Shown: positions 9,207-19,643 of the stretch, piece after piece
Numbering within the stretch: position 1 is the first letter of the stretch
Layout: each line of letters begins with the position of its first letter
Origin: Thecamonas trahens ATCC 50062
Taxonomy: Eukaryota; Protista; Apusomonadida
Direction of reading: 5' to 3'
Length of the DNA stretch: 64,000 nt
NCBI RefSeq assembly: GCF_000142905.1
Contig: NW_013657672.1
Span: 451,826-515,825, forward strand
Notes under the pieces: model-generated
Seen by the model: the letters and a program-made list of their open reading frames with translations, nothing else
Told to the model about the DNA's origin: nothing
Database searches by the model: none
Made by a program: the position numbers and the translations under genes

Positions 9207-12200
9207 TCATGACAGCGTCGGCAACGCAATGCCGCCGGGCGCAGCATCGGCCGACGACGCAGACGCCACATCGTCGTCAAGTGACATCGAGTCGAACAGC
9301 CGCGACGAATACGTCCGGATCCGGCTCGCCACCTCGTCGGGTGCGTCGTCGGCAGCAAGCGCACTAAGGAGCTCGGTGAGGTGGCTCTCACCGTTGAGCT
9401 CCTGTGTCCGCGCGAGATACGCCACCGAAAACGCCTCCTCCTGCGCAAGGATGAGCTTGGCCACCGAGGCGTACGCCGTCTCTACAAACTCGGGCGGCAC
9501 GTCAAGGCCATCTGCAAGCGCCTCATCGGCGCCCGACGATGCCGGGCCTGACGTGAGCGAGTCCAGGAACTGCGACATGGCGTCGTGGTTTGAGACCACA
9601 AACTCGTTCATCTTGGCCATGAACGGCTCTTTGCTCCCAAACTCCTTGCCGTTGGACAAGTTCTGGATGACCTTGGCCAGCAGAATAAGCACCCGCTGCG
9701 CCGACTTGTTCGGTGGGCCCTCGAGAAGGCCGTAGGCGTGCGGCGCCGTGAGCGCAGGAACCAGGAAGCGGAGGAAGAAAAATCCGCCGACCGTCACAGA
9801 TCGCAGGTCACTCTGCAGTCGCGCAAGAACGCGCCCGGCCTGCGGCGAGCCTGGATTCTGAACCGCAACCTGATCCTCCACAAACCGCGTTACAAGCTCG
9901 TAGTCGGATGCAATCGTGTCCAGGTTCTCCGACCATGCCGCAAGCAGCTGGTTGCGCTCAGCCTCGCTCACTCTCGTTGCGCCCAGTGCGTTCAGCAGCC
10001 GCGCAGCTTCGTCTTGCGACGTCGCCAGCGAAGCCGCTGCCGCACCGATTGTCTCATGGACTGACGACGCCAGCGACGCAAGCGAAATCGGAAACTTGGC
10101 GCTCGTGGCGCTCATCACCACAGCAAACAGCTCGCGGAACGATGGCGGCACGTTCTCCATCGACATCTGGATCCGCACCCATGCCGACTGGCAGAGCGTG
10201 AGGAGCTTGAACCGGTTGACGTCCACGTTCGAGTCGAGCAAGTCGACCTCGCCGTCGTCGGGTCCCGCCACCGACACACGCTTGGCATCAACCTCCACGC
10301 GCCCGTACTTGGACACTGCCTCCGCCACCACCATACCCAGCGTCGCCGACAGGTAGTCGATCCCGTGGATCTTCGAGAACACTTTGAACGCCTTGGTTGC
10401 CAGCGAGTTGGTTCGGAACAGCGTGTTGAGGGAGAGCGCGCAAGCCACCTCGGCTTGGACCTGCGCCGTGAGGAACGCCAGGCTCTGCCCGGCCGCCTCA
10501 TAGATGTGGACCAGCGATCGCGCGGCTAGATCCGCGTCTGCAGTCCCCACCACATCTGCCAGCGCCAGCGCCAACGCAAAGTCCGGTGGCCACGAGACCA
10601 TCGCCTTTTCCAGCGCGTCTCGCTTGACCCGGCTCAGCGGCGGCGCGCTCCGCGATCCCAACGTCCCGTACACTACCGCCCGACGCAGCTTGGCCGTCAG
10701 CTTGAGCGGCTGCACGCCTGCCTCGGCCTTGGATCGCATGTAGAGCCAGAGCCCGGTGAGAACGCCGGCAACCACTACAACAACAACCAGCACCACGGCA
10801 GCCACAATACCTCCCGTGTTTGACGAGCTCGGTGATGGAGTCACAACGCCCGCCACCGGGCACGCCGCCAGCGGCGTCTCACTTTCGCCGCACCCAGCCG
10901 ACGCCGTTGTGCACACCCCGCTGCTCGCGCACCAGCCACACTCGGCAAGGAGCGAGACTGTGCACTCGGCGCAAGTTCTCGGCATCCCACAATCATAGTA
11001 CGTGAACGACGACCCACTCGCATAGTTGCGCCCGCCCTTCGCCACCGTCATCGGCCCGCCGCCGGCCTCGCGCCCTGCAGGCATCGTACACTCGAGCGCA
11101 CTCGACGAGAGCCGCACACACACACCAGTTGCATCTGCAAGCGGATGGCTGATTGCGTAGTCGGTCCCGGCCACAAACGTGCCACCAGCCAGCACCACCC
11201 GCGTCCCACCCGCGAGCGAGCCCGATGTCGGCGAGCCCGCCCCGCCGGTCAGCGCCGGGCAGCTGGCGTCCGACGACGCAAACACGGGCAGACCGCCCGA
11301 GCACGCGCCTGCGGTGGTGCACTCGGACGACGAGAGGCACCATCCGCAGTCGGCCCCACCGGCAGTGCATGCCGAGCAAACGCTGCCTACGCATGCGTAG
11401 TACATCACAGAGAGCGTCGAGTCGGCCACCGTCGCCAGTCCGTCTGTTCCCGCCGCCGCCACCGCCGCCTGCCGCGACGCCGCTCCCTGCGACGCCGCCG
11501 GAATCGCGCACCGCACAACATGGCTCCCGTCGGTCGTCGCCGGTACCACAATCGGCGTGCCTGCCGCAGTAAACACGCACTCGAGCACTCCGGAGCTTGC
11601 CGCCCCGCCGCTCACCGCGCCTGCTCGCAGTGGGTCCAGCGTCAGCGTCAGCATCGTCCCGCCCGGCGCGCCTACCGACAGCGGACTCACCGACGCCATG
11701 CGCGGGCACTGACCGGCGGTAGTCACAAACGGCGAGTAACTCGCACACCCGGACGCCGGCAGACATCTTCCAGCAGAAACACAGAACCCACACGGCGATG
11801 CGTTCGGCACGTTTGGCACATACGCAAGGCACTCCGAGCATGATGAGCCTGCCGGTGCACACTCGTACGCCTCGAACTTCTTCTCCGGCGCAGAGAGCCG
11901 CTTGGCAGAGCCCGAGCGCCGCACACCCACGGTGAGCGCCATCGGCAGCTCCGCCGGCGGAAAAGTGCACACCAGCGACGGTGGCGAGCCTGAAAGAAAG
12001 GTCGTAGGCACCTCCATGCCGGCTTCGGCATCGTCTGCAGACGTGTTGTAGAGGCAGGCCATGCCGGCGTCAAAGCCGGTTCCAGTCAGCGTGACCAGGA
12101 GCTCGGCGCTCGAAATCTCTTGTGCACTCGGTGCAATCGAGGTAACGGCCGGGCAGTTGTGAAAGGTATCGCCGACGGCGCAACCGCCCTCGGTCCCCAC

Positions 12201-14255
12201 GTCGCGGCACGTCGAGTCGCTCTCGCACCAAAAGCACGAGTTTGAGCCAAACGCGCAGTCGGCACACGACGACGACGACTCGCCGCAGGTCACGTACCGG
12301 TAGCTCGCAAGCGGGTCGCTGCTTCCGATGAATGGCGTAAAAGCTCCGTCAATCGGCAGTGGCGGCAGCGTGCCGAGCACAAGCTCGAGGCTCACGTCGC
12401 CGCTGCTGCCGCCCACGGCGCTCGGCGCAACGCAGCTGACCGAGCTGCTCGTTGGGTTCCAGCTCGCACCCACAGCCACCGTCTTGTTGAACACACACGT
12501 GTAGCTCGTTCCCGCGATGCTTGGGTCAACAAAGCCCTGTCCGGTCAGTATCACCGAGTTGCCACCATCCGGCGGGCCCTTGGACGGCGCCACACGGCTA
12601 AGCGCGGGGCATGTCTCCGACACCACAAACGATGCTGCCTCGCATAGGCTTGCGATCGTCGACGATGGCGAGCAAAACCCACCGTAAGAAGGGCACCATG
12701 AGCAGACTCCTCCACCGGTCGCCACACACGCATGGCACGACGAGTTGCTCGATCCGCACGACACATACTCGAGCGAGTAGCTCTCGGGCGCATAGCTCGC
12801 GCCCAGGTGTTCCAGCGACATGTTGGCCGTCCCGGCCGGACCCGTCGGAATTAAAGCCCGAAGCTCGGTCTCGGAGACAAAGGTCGTGCTCGCCGTGCCG
12901 TAGCCCGTATCAAACCGAGCCGAGACCGCAGGCAAAACGTCGACAAAGCCTACACCAGTGATTGTGAGCTCGCCGCTGGCCGCGGTGTCGGCGACAACCG
13001 CGGTTGGGGCAATCGCCGTCACCGCCGGGCACACCGTCGGCGGCACACATACGCTGTCACGCTTCTCGGTGCAGGTCATCGTTGTCGCGCACCACGCGCA
13101 GTAGCCGTCAACCGCGCAGCTTGCGCACGAGGTATAAGAGCCGCAGTCATGGTGCTGGATTCTGGAGAGTACCGCAGGGTCACTGGCGGTCACCACAAAC
13201 ACCTCGTTGGTGTTGGGAACGAGAGCGTAGTCGCGCGTGCTGGACACCTTGTTCGACGTGAGCTCGAGCGTGTCGTACACACTCAGGTCTTCCGGATCAA
13301 ACCGAACAAGTGCGTTCGGTGACGAGGTGACAACAAAGAGAGCGTCGCCGTCGGCATCGTACCACATCGCACGGATGGTGCCCTTCGCGATGCCGAGGCC
13401 GACCACGGTTGGCGGGATGGACGTCTCGTCGAGGGCAAGAATAAAGTCCTGGTCGGTCGCGGCGAACATCTTCCGGCGGACCTCTGAGTATGCCAGCGCC
13501 ACGTAGTCGCAGCAACCGACCGTGTGGAAGGCGCCGTTGCGGGGGTTTGCTCGCTCAAGGATGGCGATGCGCGCCTGCTTCCACCCAATCCACACATGGG
13601 TGTCGGTGGCAGTGGCCACAAGTGTCTTCTCCTCGCATCCGCTCGGACTAAGCTGCGGAAGATCAAAGGCCTCGTTCCGGATGCCATCGTGGATGAGAAG
13701 TGGTGCAGAGGTACTGGCCTCACATAGGTACGTCACATCGTAGTCGGCGTCATGGAACATGACGTGGAGGCTTGTACCGTACGACTGGACGACAGTGCCT
13801 TCGGCCGGCGATGCAGTCCACGTACCCGAGGCCGGCGGAAAGGGGATGGTCACCGTGCTCCTGGGGCTTGCCCGCACGCCGACGATGAGATCGCCGTCGC
13901 TCCGCCGCGCCACGCCGACCGAAGACGAGTCCCAGGCGCGAAAGGCGACGACGCCGCTCGCTGACAGCCCGCCGTCCGCCTCGGCCTGCTCGTCAAAGGG
14001 CCACGTCGCCCGCGGCACCGACCACAGCACCTTGTTGCCGCAAAAGAAGAAACGATCCGTCGGCTGATCGTACATCATCGCCCGCACCACTCGATAGTCT
14101 CCGTGACTCTGCTCCTTGTTGGCCAGCTCAGCCATGCCAGAAAAGGCCGCAGCAGAGACAGCCAGCCAGCCTCCAACGATGGCCACACTCGCCAGGGCGA
14201 CCACGAGCCCATGCGCGGCACTTTCCCTGTCCGGTGTACCATACCGAGTACGCAA
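9207..14255 (-). CDS. Plexin-like single-pass receptor: signal peptide, beta-propeller, 6 PSI + 5 IPT/TIG, TM, cytoplasmic RasGAP
   Basis: Six CxxxxSCxxC...CxWC...CP PSI motifs alternate with IPT motifs (e.g. PSKGPPDGGNSVILTGQGF). TM IVAAVVLVVVVVVAGVLTGLWLY at about 10745-10810. RasGAP motifs TLFRTNS and GGFFFLRFLVPAL...AKVIQNL...KEPFM. The track start is TTG; the true ATG is probably 14212 or 14242 with a missing G. Confidence 0.88.
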   Translation of the reverse strand: MRTRYGTPDRESAAHGLVVALASVAIVGGWLAVSAAAFSGMAELANKEQSHGDYRVVRAMMYDQPTDRFFFCGNKVLWSVPRATWPFDEQAEADGGLSASGVVAFRAWDSSSVGVARRSDGDLIVGVRASPRSTVTIPFPPASGTWTASPAEGTVVQSYGTSLHVMFHDADYDVTYLCEASTSAPLLIHDGIRNEAFDLPQLSPSGCEEKTLVATATDTHVWIGWKQARIAILERANPRNGAFHTVGCCDYVALAYSEVRRKMFAATDQDFILALDETSIPPTVVGLGIAKGTIRAMWYDADGDALFVVTSSPNALVRFDPEDLSVYDTLELTSNKVSSTRDYALVPNTNEVFVVTASDPAVLSRIQHHDCGSYTSCASCAVDGYCAWCATTMTCTEKRDSVCVPPTVCPAVTAIAPTAVVADTAASGELTITGVGFVDVLPAVSARFDTGYGTASTTFVSETELRALIPTGPAGTANMSLEHLGASYAPESYSLEYVSCGSSNSSCHACVATGGGVCSWCPSYGGFCSPSSTIASLCEAASFVVSETCPALSRVAPSKGPPDGGNSVILTGQGFVDPSIAGTSYTCVFNKTVAVGASWNPTSSSVSCVAPSAVGGSSGDVSLELVLGTLPPLPIDGAFTPFIGSSDPLASYRYVTCGESSSSCADCAFGSNSCFWCESDSTCRDVGTEGGCAVGDTFHNCPAVTSIAPSAQEISSAELLVTLTGTGFDAGMACLYNTSADDAEAGMEVPTTFLSGSPPSLVCTFPPAELPMALTVGVRRSGSAKRLSAPEKKFEAYECAPAGSSCSECLAYVPNVPNASPCGFCVSAGRCLPASGCASYSPFVTTAGQCPRMASVSPLSVGAPGGTMLTLTLDPLRAGAVSGGAASSGVLECVFTAAGTPIVVPATTDGSHVVRCAIPAASQGAASRQAAVAAAGTDGLATVADSTLSVMYYACVGSVCSACTAGGADCGWCLSSSECTTAGACSGGLPVFASSDASCPALTGGAGSPTSGSLAGGTRVVLAGGTFVAGTDYAISHPLADATGVCVRLSSSALECTMPAGREAGGGPMTVAKGGRNYASGSSFTYYDCGMPRTCAECTVSLLAECGWCASSGVCTTASAGCGESETPLAACPVAGVVTPSPSSSNTGGIVAAVVLVVVVVVAGVLTGLWLYMRSKAEAGVQPLKLTAKLRRAVVYGTLGSRSAPPLSRVKRDALEKAMVSWPPDFALALALADVVGTADADLAARSLVHIYEAAGQSLAFLTAQVQAEVACALSLNTLFRTNSLATKAFKVFSKIHGIDYLSATLGMVVAEAVSKYGRVEVDAKRVSVAGPDDGEVDLLDSNVDVNRFKLLTLCQSAWVRIQMSMENVPPSFRELFAVVMSATSAKFPISLASLASSVHETIGAAAASLATSQDEAARLLNALGATRVSEAERNQLLAAWSENLDTIASDYELVTRFVEDQVAVQNPGSPQAGRVLARLQSDLRSVTVGGFFFLRFLVPALTAPHAYGLLEGPPNKSAQRVLILLAKVIQNLSNGKEFGSKEPFMAKMNEFVVSNHDAMSQFLDSLTSGPASSGADEALADGLDVPPEFVETAYASVAKLILAQEEAFSVAYLARTQELNGESHLTELLSALAADDAPDEVASRIRTYSSRLFDSMSLDDDVASASSADAAPGGIALPTLS

Positions 14256-14594
14256 GCACTAGAAAGATAGGTATGGAGATGTGGGCCAGAGAGAGTTCCT
14301 TTGCCATAGTGGCTGGTGATGTTCCTCGCGAACGAGCGTGGCGCACCTGGCAAGGCTTGCAAAGGTTGCAAAGGACTTCGGTATAAAAGAGCAAACTATG
14401 TTCTCAAAAAGCATTGTATCCTCTGCCGGGATTTTGCCCACCACCAGCGATTGTGGAACCTGTCGTCGGCAAAGGCGCCCTCTGCTTCGCCAGAACAGCC
14501 CGGGACGCAAGCCGGAGAGCCAAGACTCGGTCAAAGCCGCACCACTGCCGCCACCTCCTCCTCCACCGAGTACACCTCTCGCCTACAAGCTGGG

Positions 14595-16715
14595 ATGGGC
14601 CGCGCCGAATGTCCGGTCTGCTTTGGCACCTATCCCTCCGCCCTCATCCACGCCCACGTTCTGGTCTGCCTCCGCGCTCCCCCGCCTACGCTCCCGACCA
14701 TGGCCTGTCCGCTCTGTGCCCGTCGCTTTGCCCGCTCAATCATCGAGAGACACGCCGCCACATGCAATGGTCCGCCGCTGGCGCGGGCCTCGCCGCGGCT
14801 TGCGCCACCGCGTCGCGTCCCTACTCCTGCTCCGCGCTCCGCGCAGATCCCGCCGCTCGCGCAAGTACCGGTCACACTCCCGCCGCCGCCATCGTCGCCG
14901 ACGGCTAGATCGCTGCGCTCGCCTGTACGATCACCGGCCCACCCGCGCGTCATGCACTTTCCGCCGCCGTCGCCTTCGCTCGCTGCCTGTGCCGGCCGAG
15001 TTGCCTCGATCCTCACCGCCTTTCCCCGCCGCCCGCCGCACCCACATCCGTCACCGCGCGGCCAGCTCTCGCCACGCCCGCACATGCACTCGCGCCCGCT
15101 CGCATCTACGCTCCCGCTCCCGCTCCTGAATCCATCACCAAGCCACCGGTTGATGCCGCGGCAACCGGCATCGATCCGCACACCGCGAAATGCGATCGTG
15201 ACCGCACGGATGGCGTTCCCCAGTCCCGCCCCGGCTCCGGCTCTGTACGACGCTCCCAAGCTCGCCAAAGCGTTCTACTCTGCGACCACGTTTGCGAATA
15301 CCCTCTCGACCTTTGCCGCTATTGCTCACTCGGTCGGGCTCGACGATCTGCCGGTGGCGGAGCGGTACCCGGTCCTCCGCGACGCGTGCTTTGGACATAT
15401 GCGGCTGCGGCAGATATTCCGCCAGCACCTTGACCCGCTCCGTGCACGCGAGGGCTACGCGTCCGCCCCGTGCACCGGGATGCGGGTCCTGGTTCTCGGT
15501 GCCGGTCCGGGTGGCCTGCGGACCGCCATCGAAGCGGCGGTCCTCGGTGCTGAGGTGCTGGTCGCCGAGAAGCGGCACAGGTTCTCGCGGCACAACGTGC
15601 TGCACCTGTGGAAGTTTATGGTCGCCGACTGTCAGGCGCTCGGAGTCAAGGCGCTCGCGCCACGGTTCTGCCGCGGCGGCCTCAACCACGTCTCGATCAA
15701 AGCGCTTCAGCTTGCGCTCACCAAAATTGCGCTCCTCGCCGGCGCCGTCGTGGTGCCGGGCCAGTCCGTGGCGGGCGTCTCGGCCTTTGACAACGATAGG
15801 GAGCGGTGGCATGTCGAGCCCGAGGCGGGCACCGAGCTGGCGCCGCGGGTTGCGGACTTTGACTTTGATGTGGTGGTCGGCGGGTGCGGATCGGCGGCTC
15901 CGCGGCTCCGCGGCTTTACATCGTCGACGTTTCGGGCGAACGTGGCCATTGGCATCACCGCCAACTTTGTCCGCCGCGGCTCCGCCGCCGAGTCCAAACT
16001 CCATGAGATCCCAGGCATTGGCCGGCAGTACCATCCGCAGGTCTTCAACGCCATCGAGGCCGAGACCGGTGTCGCACTCGAGAACCTGGTTTACTATCAG
16101 GACGAAACACACTACTTTGTCATGACCGTCTCCCGCGACTCGCTTGTGGCCCGCGGCGCGGTCATTGCTGACCTCCCCAGCATCGACGCGCTCCTCGCCC
16201 GCGACAACATCGACTGCGACGCACTGCACGCCCTGTGCATGGACGTTGCGCTAGCAGCAACCCGGCTGCTCGCCGGCGCTGAGCTGCCCGAGCCCGAGTT
16301 TGCGCTCACAGCACGCGGAGCGCCCGACGTCGCTGTCTTTGACTTTACCGAGATCTCGTACCTTGACGCTTCGGCGCGGGTAGAACTCGCTCGCCGCGGC
16401 TCCAGCGAGCGCTCGCTGATCCTTGCTCACGTCGGAGACGCATTGCTTGAGCCGTTTTGGCCGCAGGGTACCGGCGCGTCGCGGGCTTTTCTCTCCGCGC
16501 TCGACCTCGCGCACATGCTTGTCCGACTTGCTGGTGGCACTCCGGTGCCCGAGGCGCTTGAGGAGCGTGAGCGCGTCTATGCGCTCCTCTCGTCGACGAC
16601 TGACGGCAACATTCGCAAGACCTTTGCCTCACACACTCACGAGCCGGCCAGTCGGTACGACTTTGTGCCGCCACCGTCGGGACGCGACGTGTCTGATCTC
16701 ATTACCAGCGTGTAA
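14595..16715 (+). CDS. MICAL: MICAL-type FAD monooxygenase with two N-terminal UBZ/C2HC-like zinc fingers
   Basis: VLVLGAGPGGLRTAIE...EKRHRFSRHNVLHLW...FCRGGLNHVSIKALQ; AIGITANF; LENLVYYQDETHYFVMT; DVAVFDFT; VGDALLEPFWPQGTG are MICAL monooxygenase signatures. N-terminal CPVC..HVLVC and CPLC..HAATC. ATG at 14595; the frame is open from 14316. Confidence 0.9.
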   Translation: MGRAECPVCFGTYPSALIHAHVLVCLRAPPPTLPTMACPLCARRFARSIIERHAATCNGPPLARASPRLAPPRRVPTPAPRSAQIPPLAQVPVTLPPPPSSPTARSLRSPVRSPAHPRVMHFPPPSPSLAACAGRVASILTAFPRRPPHPHPSPRGQLSPRPHMHSRPLASTLPLPLLNPSPSHRLMPRQPASIRTPRNAIVTARMAFPSPAPAPALYDAPKLAKAFYSATTFANTLSTFAAIAHSVGLDDLPVAERYPVLRDACFGHMRLRQIFRQHLDPLRAREGYASAPCTGMRVLVLGAGPGGLRTAIEAAVLGAEVLVAEKRHRFSRHNVLHLWKFMVADCQALGVKALAPRFCRGGLNHVSIKALQLALTKIALLAGAVVVPGQSVAGVSAFDNDRERWHVEPEAGTELAPRVADFDFDVVVGGCGSAAPRLRGFTSSTFRANVAIGITANFVRRGSAAESKLHEIPGIGRQYHPQVFNAIEAETGVALENLVYYQDETHYFVMTVSRDSLVARGAVIADLPSIDALLARDNIDCDALHALCMDVALAATRLLAGAELPEPEFALTARGAPDVAVFDFTEISYLDASARVELARRGSSERSLILAHVGDALLEPFWPQGTGASRAFLSALDLAHMLVRLAGGTPVPEALEERERVYALLSSTTDGNIRKTFASHTHEPASRYDFVPPPSGRDVSDLITSV

Positions 16716-16727
16716 TTCGCCCTTCTT

Positions 16728-19643
16728 TTACCGTCCGCTGACCGAAGTACCGGCAACAAAGAGGCCAAGACCGGCTGATGGCGCCGCATCCGGCACGAGC
16801 GCGTGTTTTCCGGGCGGAGCGCCAGCGCTCGAGCCTGGCCCACGGGCTGGCCGCAGCCGCGACGATGCGAGCTGTGGCGGCCTGCGGCGCGAGGTCTTGA
16901 GGTATGAATTCTCGTTAAAACGGGCAACACGGGCCGGCGGTGCCTTGGCCGGCAGGGAAGGCGCCGGCTCGTTCTCCTTGGTCGCCGCAAGCAACGCAGC
17001 GAGCGAAGCAGTGCGGGCGGCGGTGGAAGCGGCGGCCGCTTCGGCCGCAGCGGCGGCTGCAGCTTGCATGGCGAGGTCAGAGCGGGGCCCCCGCTCCGGT
17101 GAGCCAGCCAGCGAGTTGGGCTTGAGCTCCATATCCGACGGGTGCGGCAGGTGCGGTGGGGACGCTGCGGCCCGCGCATCGGCTTCGGCGGCCTCCTTGA
17201 TGCGGGCGTGGAGCTCAGTCCGGGCCTCCGGCAGAAGGTTCCACGACAGCGGCATCGAGAGCGAGGTGGTAATCGAGGCTTCAAAGAGGGTGCGAACCCG
17301 CGAGACATGGACAATGGCATCACGGCGGCGCTTCTCCTTGACTCGCTTGCGCTCGAGCTCGGCCGCAATGGGAACGCCAGGTATTTTGGCAAGGATGTCG
17401 AAGAGCTCCTGGTCGTACACCATCGGCCTGCCCTCGCAATCGATTTCAGGCGGCGGGAGGCCGTCGGTCTCGCCGCTGTCGGACTCTTCCTTCGGCACCG
17501 GGGGCGGGCGGGAGCGGCGGACCGACATCGAGCCCTTGCTCAGCTTGGCAGCGAGCATCTCCTGCGCAGCCTTGGCCCGGCCAGAGAATCGGGCCTTGAT
17601 AGCGGCAGCCTTGAGTCGCTCGGCCTCGGCAGCCTCACGCTGGGCAAGCGCGTGCTCGCGGCGCTTAGCCGACGCCGACGTCTCCGAGTACAGCGTCGAG
17701 GTGTTGACAAAGTATGGAGCGTAGACGGCCATGGCGTCGTCGTCGGGCGTCGGATAAATGCGCTTGTAGCCACTGAGGACCGAGTCCTCGTACGCGGTCT
17801 GGGCCTCCCAGAACTCGGGACTCTGTCTTGCTGACGACGAGGCTTCACCGTCGGCACCCGCCGTAGCGGCCACAGGCCGCGAGCCTGGCGACGGCGTCGC
17901 TTCGGCAGCCGCCGCTGCCCCAGCGAGCTCGTCGGTTGGCGCGGTCGAGCCGGCGCGGTTTGGGGCCGTCAGCCGGTCCTGCACCGCGGCGCGGTGCGCC
18001 TTGTGAAAGCGCGACTTGGCCTTGGGGTCGAGGTTGAGGAGGGCGAGGGCCTCGGCGATGACGCCGCTCTTAACGTTGCGGTCGATTTCGGCGTCAGTGC
18101 CAAACGACGGCGAGTGGTTGACCTCGAGAATCCACGGCTTGAGGGCGGCGTCGATCATGATGTCAAAGCCAAGAATCTCAAAGCATTGGAAGGGGGTGGC
18201 GGTCGGTGCCGATGAGGTGAACACAGTGGCGTAGGTGTGGGCGAGCGTCGGCTGGGCAGTGATGAGGGTCTTGATGATGGCGTCCTCGATGGAAGCCCAG
18301 AGGGCCGGGACGTCGATACCGGCAGCAGCCCACTCGGCGTTCTGTACCTTGATGGAGCGCTTGGCGCCGTCGGAGCCATCGCCGGCGGAGAAATTGGTGT
18401 TCTTCTTGTTGACCGAGTAGTTGGTGAGGTGCTGAAAGGCCGAGCCGAGCGACTTGGACGTCGGCTGCGAGTACTTTTCGGTGCAGAGGCGGACAAGGCC
18501 GTCGTCGTAGATGAAGATACGTAGCGGGTCGGCCGAAGTGACGAGGACGTAGATGCGAAGGTCGAACTTGTAACCGTCGATGAGCAGCGGGTTGTTGACA
18601 TACACCTGCGCCACGTAGTGGTCAAAGGCGCCGATCTCGTCGCCAGTGTGGGTGAGGAAAATGCCCTTGCCCTGCGCCGAGTTCTCGGGCTTGCAGATGA
18701 GTGGCTTTGCAGAGCGCTTGCGAAAGTGGGCCTTAAAGTCGCCGTAGTCGGCTGGGAGGATCCAGGTCTTGGGGAAAAAGGTGAACGCGTCCGGAAACTT
18801 GCGCTGCATGCGGGTGAGGTTGCGGGCGAGTGAGTCCTTGCGACAGATCTCGTGCATGCCCGGGAAGTGATTAATCCGCTGGAACGGCTTCATGGTGGAA
18901 AGGATTTGCAGCGGCGCCGTAGAGTCGATCCAGTACACGTCCCACTCTCGGGCCGCGTTGGACTCTTGCACGTGCCATCCGAGCTCGGCCACGCACGCCC
19001 GGACCACCTCGTACTTGCACTGCTGCACACAGACGTTGACGGCCTTGGCCGACTTGCTCAGCCGGGTCCTCGTCCCGCGGTTGTTGGCGGCGACGGCATC
19101 GGCCCGGGACTTGAGCCGCCTGCTCTTGGACGAGCTCTGCAACCGTTTGGCCGACGTGTCCATCTTGGTCATCATGCCCGAGACCTCGGTCAGCAGCTTC
19201 TTTCCCTTGCCACTCCGTCGGCTCCCCGTCGTCGTCACCGCCGTCGACGCTGGCCCACCCCCGCGCCCACGCCCGCTCCCGCTCCCGCTGCCTCTGCCAC
19301 CTGTCCGACTCGACTTTGCCAAATTTTGAATGGCCGCCCGACGCGCGCCAGGCCGAGCCGAAGAGGCGGCATGGCGGACCGCGGCTGGGCTGGTGTGGCC
19401 AATGTCGGAGTCGTCAGACTCGTACTCGTACGAGTATGCGTATACCGAGACTAGGGTGGAGCCCTCATCAGACTCGGTGTACTCTTCGTACTCGGACGAG
19501 GTGTCTGTGCATGTGCTTGCGCTTGCGCTCGATTCGTCCGCCATGCTGGCGAACACTGGGCGTGGAGAGGTGGGCGAAAGTGAGTGTGGTTGGCTGCCAA
19601 TTGGCTCTCGCTGGAGGGGTGGGAGGGGGGAGGGGGGGCGCAT
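16728..19643 (-). CDS. TTLL6: Tubulin polyglutamylase, TTLL6/13-like
   Basis: WDVYWID, QRINHFPGMHEICRKDSLARNL, FFPKTWILP, KPENSAQGKGI, KFDLRIYVLVTS, HLTNYSVNK, CFEILGFDIM, LEVNHSPSF. Alternative ATG at 19544. Confidence 0.9.
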   Translation of the reverse strand: MRPPSPLPPLQREPIGSQPHSLSPTSPRPVFASMADESSASASTCTDTSSEYEEYTESDEGSTLVSVYAYSYEYESDDSDIGHTSPAAVRHAASSARPGARRAAIQNLAKSSRTGGRGSGSGSGRGRGGGPASTAVTTTGSRRSGKGKKLLTEVSGMMTKMDTSAKRLQSSSKSRRLKSRADAVAANNRGTRTRLSKSAKAVNVCVQQCKYEVVRACVAELGWHVQESNAAREWDVYWIDSTAPLQILSTMKPFQRINHFPGMHEICRKDSLARNLTRMQRKFPDAFTFFPKTWILPADYGDFKAHFRKRSAKPLICKPENSAQGKGIFLTHTGDEIGAFDHYVAQVYVNNPLLIDGYKFDLRIYVLVTSADPLRIFIYDDGLVRLCTEKYSQPTSKSLGSAFQHLTNYSVNKKNTNFSAGDGSDGAKRSIKVQNAEWAAAGIDVPALWASIEDAIIKTLITAQPTLAHTYATVFTSSAPTATPFQCFEILGFDIMIDAALKPWILEVNHSPSFGTDAEIDRNVKSGVIAEALALLNLDPKAKSRFHKAHRAAVQDRLTAPNRAGSTAPTDELAGAAAAAEATPSPGSRPVAATAGADGEASSSARQSPEFWEAQTAYEDSVLSGYKRIYPTPDDDAMAVYAPYFVNTSTLYSETSASAKRREHALAQREAAEAERLKAAAIKARFSGRAKAAQEMLAAKLSKGSMSVRRSRPPPVPKEESDSGETDGLPPPEIDCEGRPMVYDQELFDILAKIPGVPIAAELERKRVKEKRRRDAIVHVSRVRTLFEASITTSLSMPLSWNLLPEARTELHARIKEAAEADARAAASPPHLPHPSDMELKPNSLAGSPERGPRSDLAMQAAAAAAAEAAAASTAARTASLAALLAATKENEPAPSLPAKAPPARVARFNENSYLKTSRRRPPQLASSRLRPARGPGSSAGAPPGKHALVPDAAPSAGLGLFVAGTSVSGR

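Follow-up and report, generated by a model that had tools for sequence, protein, structure and literature searches.

A plexin-like receptor RasGAP gene and a MICAL-type monooxygenase gene lie head to head in Thecamonas trahens, probably as chance neighbours

Do two divergent genes in a unicellular, non-metazoan genome, one for a receptor of plexin-like layout and one for a MICAL-type monooxygenase, belong to one pathway? The question is raised by a stretch of 64,000 nucleotides from Thecamonas trahens ATCC 50062 (contig C8 of a 28.7-Mb assembly), here called the window and numbered from its first letter. An earlier note on this DNA had read the pair as an ancestral plexin-MICAL module. That reading found no support: the GTPase-activating protein (GAP) domain of the receptor is of the classical RasGAP kind, the MICAL lacks a bMERB domain, no linkage was seen at the examined loci and the spacing of the two genes is ordinary. 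We consider it probable that they are independent genes which are neighbours by chance in a very compact protist genome, perhaps with some shared transcription. There is no evidence for a receptor-effector relationship.

The two genes and their spacer

The existence of both genes was confirmed, and they point away from each other across a short spacer, as described in the earlier note, which had estimated about 350-380 bp. The distance between the ATG of the receptor (14242) and that of the MICAL gene (14595) is 352 bp.

9207-14242, minus strand: receptor RasGAP gene; ORF with Pfam TIG, PSI and RasGAP matches; stop codon at 9207-9209; the ATG at 14242 requires four C at 14225-14227.
14243-14594, no strand: divergent spacer of 352 bp, GC 56.5%, with flat codon-position GC; TATAAAAG at 14382-14389 faces the MICAL gene.
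14595-16715, plus strand: MICAL-type gene, 706 aa; PDB and Pfam matches, metatranscriptome contigs.

The receptor is encoded by a minus-strand open reading frame (ORF, 9207-14255) of 1682 codons. Two start codons had been suggested for it, near 14212 and 14242, and in the reference neither can be read into the main ORF. The first in-frame ATG, at 14135, is the start of the public model P0011 (1642 aa); beginning there would drop the N-terminal hydrophobic stretch. A contig of the same organism from another run (X4) has an additional C behind 14224 (CCC to CCCC, window 14224-14227), which brings ATG 14242 into frame with the receptor ORF and a textbook signal peptide. This extra C comes from the single X4 contig, at a depth of 3.9, and the reference is taken to contain a one-base homopolymer error at the C-run 14225-14227. 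Because the additional base restores frame and signal peptide, ATG 14242 is the likely start of the receptor and P0011 is probably cut off at its N-terminus. ATG 14212 was rejected, as it is in frame neither in the reference nor after the one-base correction.

On the other strand, the MICAL ORF extends from 14316 to 16715, and its start was placed at ATG 14595, the position proposed before, for several reasons. It follows the TATAAAAG box (a TATA box) as the next ATG; third-position GC is elevated from this codon onwards (0.75), and the stretch 14319-14594, with flat codon-position values and lower GC, looks non-coding; two C-x2-C-x11-H-x3-C fingers follow directly; contigs of two metatranscriptomes span 14604-14937; and a relative with 57% identity keeps the frame open through a proline-rich stretch before the monooxygenase domain. 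The public model P0001 comprises only the last 501 aa of the full product of 706 aa. ATG 14319 was discarded as a start on account of flat codon-position GC, low overall GC and its location upstream of the TATA box.

The spacing is not unusual. Over its 64 kb the GC-rich window contains 28 ORFs with 200 aa or more, or roughly one gene every 2.3 kb, and the other head-to-head gaps between its long ORFs measure -208, 870 and 582 bp. A head-to-head distance of 352 bp is thus ordinary for the window and the genome; that in so dense a genome the adjacency could be chance had been a caveat of the earlier note. The pair is flanked by unrelated genes for an adaptin, a TTL-family ligase and a cyclic-nucleotide-gated channel. 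A scan of the spacer for bacterial promoters and terminators was set aside as not applicable to a eukaryote.

Metatranscriptome contigs covered the MICAL gene at 14604-14937, 15722-16220 and 16355-16753, and the receptor was barely covered, by one contig of 151 nt (window 12130-12280). No contig lay within the spacer, and no splice joints were seen in the RNA contigs of the locus. Both genes appeared in the same metatranscriptome, run X1. These findings bear on the possibility that the two genes are co-regulated and not coupled, the shared spacer correlating their transcription, which may suit genes for gliding or pseudopods, while the products have no physical or pathway link. A single TATA box in an AT-richer spacer between the two ATGs and the occurrence of both genes in RNA libraries agree with this, and compact genomes often share promoter regions. 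However, the RNA evidence consists of contigs, which carry no start sites, expression levels or strand, and that for the receptor is the one short contig. We regard co-regulation of this kind as unlikely; independent genes, possibly with some shared transcription, remain the preferred explanation.

The receptor: a plexin-like stalk in front of a classical RasGAP

The earlier note had described the receptor as a PSI/IPT protein with a membrane span and a RasGAP domain, and Pfam, PSI pattern search, hydropathy and comparisons with PDB sequences and folds agree on this layout.

14136-14242, minus strand: signal peptide region (hydropathy scan, hydrophobic core at ORF aa 16-35; brought into frame by the X4 indel).
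13149-14135, minus strand: orphan N-terminal all-beta head, putative compact beta-propeller (no Pfam match; weak repeat matches).
10851-13148, minus strand: stalk of six PSI alternating with five IPT/TIG domains (PSI regular expression, Pfam TIG and PSI, PDB matches).
10746-10820, minus strand: transmembrane helix (hydropathy scan; helix 2-28 of the AlphaFold2 model).
9516-10586, minus strand: classical RasGAP domain (PDB, Foldseek, motifs, invariant columns in alignment A2).
9786-10094, minus strand: three-helix insertion of 103 aa before the FLR motif (alignment A2; model helices 240-351).

Pfam searches of the ORF returned IPT/TIG in three stretches (1.4e-22), PSI (2.6e-07) and RasGAP PF00616 (2.2e-19). 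Six PSI cores were located by regular expression at ORF aa 371, 500, 657, 799, 955 and 1089, separated by gaps of IPT size, and a Kyte-Doolittle hydropathy scan revealed two hydrophobic stretches (aa 16-35 and about 1143-1175). A PSI and IPT/TIG stalk followed by one membrane span, as expected of a plexin, is thus present, and the best PDB sequence matches of the ectodomain and stalk were the ectodomains of plexin-A4 and plexin-A1 (1.4e-10).

The cytoplasmic part matched SynGAP (1.2e-22), neurofibromin and p120GAP among PDB sequences, in two stretches split by the insertion. The arginine finger lies in the motif FRTN (ORF aa 1280, Arg at 10413-10415) and a second arginine in the FLR motif (ORF aa 1494, Arg at 9768-9770); both motifs are invariant in alignment A2, which contains family members and SynGAP/DAB2IP proteins, and the domain is predicted to be catalytically complete. 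An AlphaFold2 (AF2) model of the cytoplasmic part built on A2 was all-helical, with a predicted local distance difference test (pLDDT) score of 77.9 and a predicted TM-score (pTM) of 0.72. Top Foldseek hits of this model were p120GAP, NF1 and SynGAP (E 5e-10 to 4e-9, TM-score up to 0.81 when normalised to the target), and plexin cytoplasmic regions reached E values of 1e-2 to 1e-1 only. Judged by sequence and modelled fold, the GAP is of the classical Ras type, like SynGAP, NF1 and p120GAP, and not of the plexin type.

The insertion of 103 aa was modelled as three long helices, with no ubiquitin-like GTPase-binding domain such as that in the split GAPs of plexins. It measures 103-114 aa in six receptor-type members, among them four paralogues and two relatives from marine metagenomes; at the same site SynGAP/DAB2IP-type proteins and the homologue P0014 have 11-12 aa. 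The alignment marks the insertion as a trait of the receptor family.

Plexin_cytopl (PF08337) was not matched in the receptor by Pfam nor in a six-frame search of the genome, and the same was true of Sema (PF01403), in the receptor at E up to 10; for the genome, neither blank is proof of absence. With these two defining features missing, the receptor is plexin-like in its layout, yet it is not a plexin.

The head of the receptor

The head (ORF residues 41-369) had been called a propeller. Predicted all-beta structure and weak matches to a protein with beta-propeller repeats bear this part of the description out in part. No Pfam family matched even at E 10, and a single-sequence AF2 model of the head with PSI1 was all-beta with a pLDDT of 35 and thus unusable, so that no fold search was based on it. 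A HMMER search of 1.84 billion cluster representatives produced two weak repeat matches only. The better of these (E 8.8e-07, five repeated stretches) lies in a bacterial-type protein with the beta-propeller repeat families DUF6923, DUF4394 and SGL. The ESM Atlas gave generic propeller leads with sub-threshold scores of at most 0.89 and nothing Sema-like, and a word-index search with receptor residues 1-480 returned the protein itself alone. A beta-propeller is a plausible fold for the head.

The last ~45 residues of the head together with PSI1 (window 13026-13250, minus strand) aligned to the junction of Sema blade 7 and PSI1 in plexins, with E values of 1.7e-05 for Drosophila PlexA and 3.7e-05 for mouse plexin-A4; Sema4D stood far lower in the list, and the PSI domain contributes most of the score of this alignment. 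These similarities hint that a Sema-type propeller in reduced form may make up the head.

A MICAL monooxygenase without the animal C-terminus

The assignment of the plus-strand gene to the MICAL-type monooxygenases was confirmed by Pfam (Rossman_Mical PF25413, 9.9e-38, 129.5 bits) and by PDB matches to MICAL3 (4.1e-97) and MICAL1 (1e-95), which cover chain residues ~15-470 and hence the whole domain. The domain is 38-40% identical to animal MICAL1/2/3 and Drosophila Mical and contains the motifs GAGPGG (GxGxxG), GD and FWP; alignment A1 has invariant columns in it. It is the only MICAL-type gene in the genome.

14610-14765, plus strand: two C-x2-C-x11-H-x3-C (UBZ4-like) zinc fingers (regular expression; zf-C2HC_2 weak, below cut-off).
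14775-15239, plus strand: proline-rich linker with 27% Pro (composition; the relative on contig L092 is also proline-rich upstream of the monooxygenase).
15261-16664, plus strand: MICAL-type FAD monooxygenase domain (PDB MICAL3/MICAL1, A1 columns, motifs).

Pfam searches of the protein detected no CH, LIM or bMERB/PIR domain, in keeping with the earlier statement that this MICAL lacks the animal plexin-binding C-terminus; the protein ends 16 residues past the PDB match (residue 690 of 706). Likewise, bMERB had no match anywhere in the genome, a blank that is not proof of absence. The closest relative, P0002, shares 57% identity and is encoded on contig L092 of 1.85 kb. Outside animals, MICAL-type monooxygenase domains occurred with other partners, namely EF-hands, or alone in a fungus.

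The two CCHC fingers are missing from the public 501-aa model, and their layout was not seen in the few MICAL-type relatives retrieved. Their matches to RAD18, WRNIP1 and RAP80 were non-significant, and ubiquitin binding by the fingers would be a guess from their spacing pattern. An actin gene of the genome encodes HQGVMVGMGQK, the D-loop motif with Met44 and Met47, which shows that the expected substrate of a MICAL exists, and no more than that.

At its 3' end the MICAL gene converges with the TTL-family (tubulin ligase-like) gene. Their stop codons are 12 bp apart (window 16713-16730), so that the 3' ends of the two genes must overlap or abut. On L092 the MICAL stop is followed after 3 bp by the end of a different convergent gene, whose fragment is not TTL-like.

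Is the adjacency meaningful?

In animals, plexin binds MICAL through the C-terminal bMERB/PIR region and thereby relieves autoinhibition (PMC9982024). Both interacting parts of this coupling, the plexin-type cytoplasmic region and bMERB/PIR, are missing from the two proteins. Because the MICAL is devoid of CH, LIM and bMERB/PIR, autoinhibition of the animal type and its release by plexin or Rab cannot apply as such.

Linkage was not detected elsewhere. Within 10 kb of P0014, a receptor homologue of the same architecture on a 210-kb metagenome contig, there is no MICAL gene. No RasGAP, PSI or IPT match occurred in 80 MICAL-like metagenome loci, which total 435 kb and of which about 15 are 10 kb or longer. 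The contigs of P0012 and P0013 displayed no receptor-MICAL linkage, and in the fungus Hyaloraphidium the MICAL-like gene lies between a peptidase and an oxidoreductase gene, with no RasGAP, PSI or IPT. Among the accessible papers none mentions MICAL together with Thecamonas; two name plexin with Thecamonas, a single time each, and in one of them the word stands for the PSI domain only.

Some points weigh against an adjacency by chance. The synteny comparisons were all made with distant organisms or short contigs and are a weak test. The contig of the closest MICAL relative, in particular, is too short for synteny. The naive odds that the MICAL gene abuts a receptor-type RasGAP gene are low, ~0.1-0.2% (from one MICAL, 5 to ~13 receptor-type or large RasGAP ORFs and an estimated ~12,500 genes), for a pair picked post hoc among thousands of adjacencies, a selection effect that carries no number. 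Finally, the head-to-head arrangement would allow co-regulation. A complex prediction for receptor cytoplasmic residues 35-470 (of a 530-aa segment) with the MICAL monooxygenase domain scored 0.00, which speaks neither for nor against binding.

A rival reading is a genuine receptor-effector module, in which a bidirectional promoter would serve one contact-sensing pathway of actin disassembly, ancestral or convergent to plexin-MICAL and coupled by other means than bMERB/PIR. The layout around the 352-bp spacer, the position of the single MICAL next to one of few receptor RasGAPs, the plexin-A-like stalk with its head/PSI1 junction resembling that of Sema and PSI1, the Met44/Met47 motif of actin and the presence of both genes in run X1 are all compatible with it. 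However, Plexin_cytopl, Sema and bMERB gave no match, sequence and fold place the GAP with the Ras type, no other examined locus had the linkage and the spacer length is ordinary for the genome. Moreover, the plexin-A and MICAL genes are not known to be linked in human or Drosophila, so that linkage is no known trait of the pathway. Taken together, such a module is distinctly improbable. We rate as more doubtful still a non-holozoan co-transcribed unit for sensing contact and disassembling actin, made up of a Sema-less, plexin-like receptor RasGAP and a stripped-down MICAL and not coupled by bMERB, whose signalling would predate animals and plexins or have arisen twice.

For two independent genes, the following functions are proposed. 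The receptor would be a type I membrane protein with a signal peptide, exposing on the outside a beta-rich orphan head that is carried by a plexin-like PSI/IPT stalk, and its classical RasGAP would face the cytoplasm. Most likely, clustering driven by a ligand or by contact would bring the GAP to membrane-bound Ras-family GTPases and turn them off. The MICAL, by homology, would use NADPH and O2 to oxidise Met44 and Met47 of actin and so destabilise filaments. It must be controlled differently from animal MICALs because the autoinhibitory, plexin- and Rab-binding C-terminus is missing, perhaps via the two ubiquitin-binding-type zinc fingers and the proline-rich linker. Some shared transcriptional control may come from the divergent spacer.

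Comparison with known systems

Like the plexins of animals and choanoflagellates, the receptor would have type I topology, with a beta-rich head directly before PSI, an alternating PSI/IPT stalk with best PDB matches to plexin-A ectodomains, and a cytoplasmic GAP of the RasGAP superfold with an insertion that separates the arginine finger from the FLR-type arginine. In contrast to plexins, it has no detectable Sema domain and a head of ~330 instead of ~500 aa, and its six PSI and five IPT domains alternate strictly, whereas plexins have three PSI and six IPT. Furthermore, its GAP belongs to PF00616 and not to Plexin_cytopl, and the insertion forms a three-helix arm in the model, where plexins carry a Rho-GTPase-binding domain of ubiquitin fold. 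The classical RasGAPs (p120GAP, neurofibromin GRD, SynGAP/DAB2IP) resemble it in sequence (E 1e-22 to 1e-19), fold and the motifs FRxN and FLR; unlike them, the receptor is anchored in the membrane behind a large ectodomain, contains the 103-aa helical insertion and lacks C2, PH and Sec14 domains. The MICAL shares the complete FAD monooxygenase domain with animal MICAL1/2/3 and Drosophila Mical and differs in having an N-terminal CCHC finger pair and a proline-rich linker instead of CH, LIM and bMERB.

A survey of Sema proteins found plexins and semaphorins in choanoflagellates and none in Capsaspora or Creolimax, and placed the origin of plexins in the common ancestor of choanoflagellates and animals, with the Sema domain as criterion (PMC6374515). 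The receptor fits the 'older parts' of the picture drawn there.

Were the two genes truly linked in function, remodelling of actin from a receptor to MICAL, so far a guidance pathway of animals, would date to the ancestor of apusomonads and opisthokonts, and a simple unicellular system for its study would be at hand. At present the adjacency is a hypothesis that is cheap to test and no finding, and the value lies in the two genes separately: a non-animal MICAL monooxygenase that lacks the autoinhibitory tail and has its domains in a new arrangement, and a receptor with the layout of a plexin around an ordinary RasGAP, whose head/PSI junction recalls that of Sema and PSI. Each is relevant to the domain shuffling from which plexins and MICALs arose.

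The receptor RasGAP family and environmental occurrence

The genome contains ~39 loci with RasGAP domains, many of them in ORFs of 1,200-2,900 aa, which is a marked expansion. PSI, IPT and RasGAP occur together in at least four other genes (contigs C35, C12, C46 and C37), making at least five in the genome. They share with the receptor of the window the membrane-proximal PSI-IPT, the membrane span and a RasGAP with an insertion of 103-114 aa. In the cytoplasmic part the copies on C35 and C12 are 99.3% identical, and the receptor of the window is the most divergent member of the family, with 30-34% identity to the others. It is also the sole examined member whose ectodomain consists of a short head and a regular PSI/IPT ladder. 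The marine metagenome relative P0013, whose cluster members come from runs ERR1711916, ERR1711991 and ERR1712065, shares 74% identity with the C37 paralogue over the cytoplasmic part.

Two Ras-family genes (L001, 16541-18489) were found 1.5-3.5 kb downstream of P0014 on its metagenome contig. This could be a GAP beside its own substrates, or chance.

Contigs at least 99% identical to the locus were present in three metatranscriptome runs labelled 'subsurface metagenome', all from one study, so that Thecamonas trahens or a near-identical strain was present in the samples concerned.

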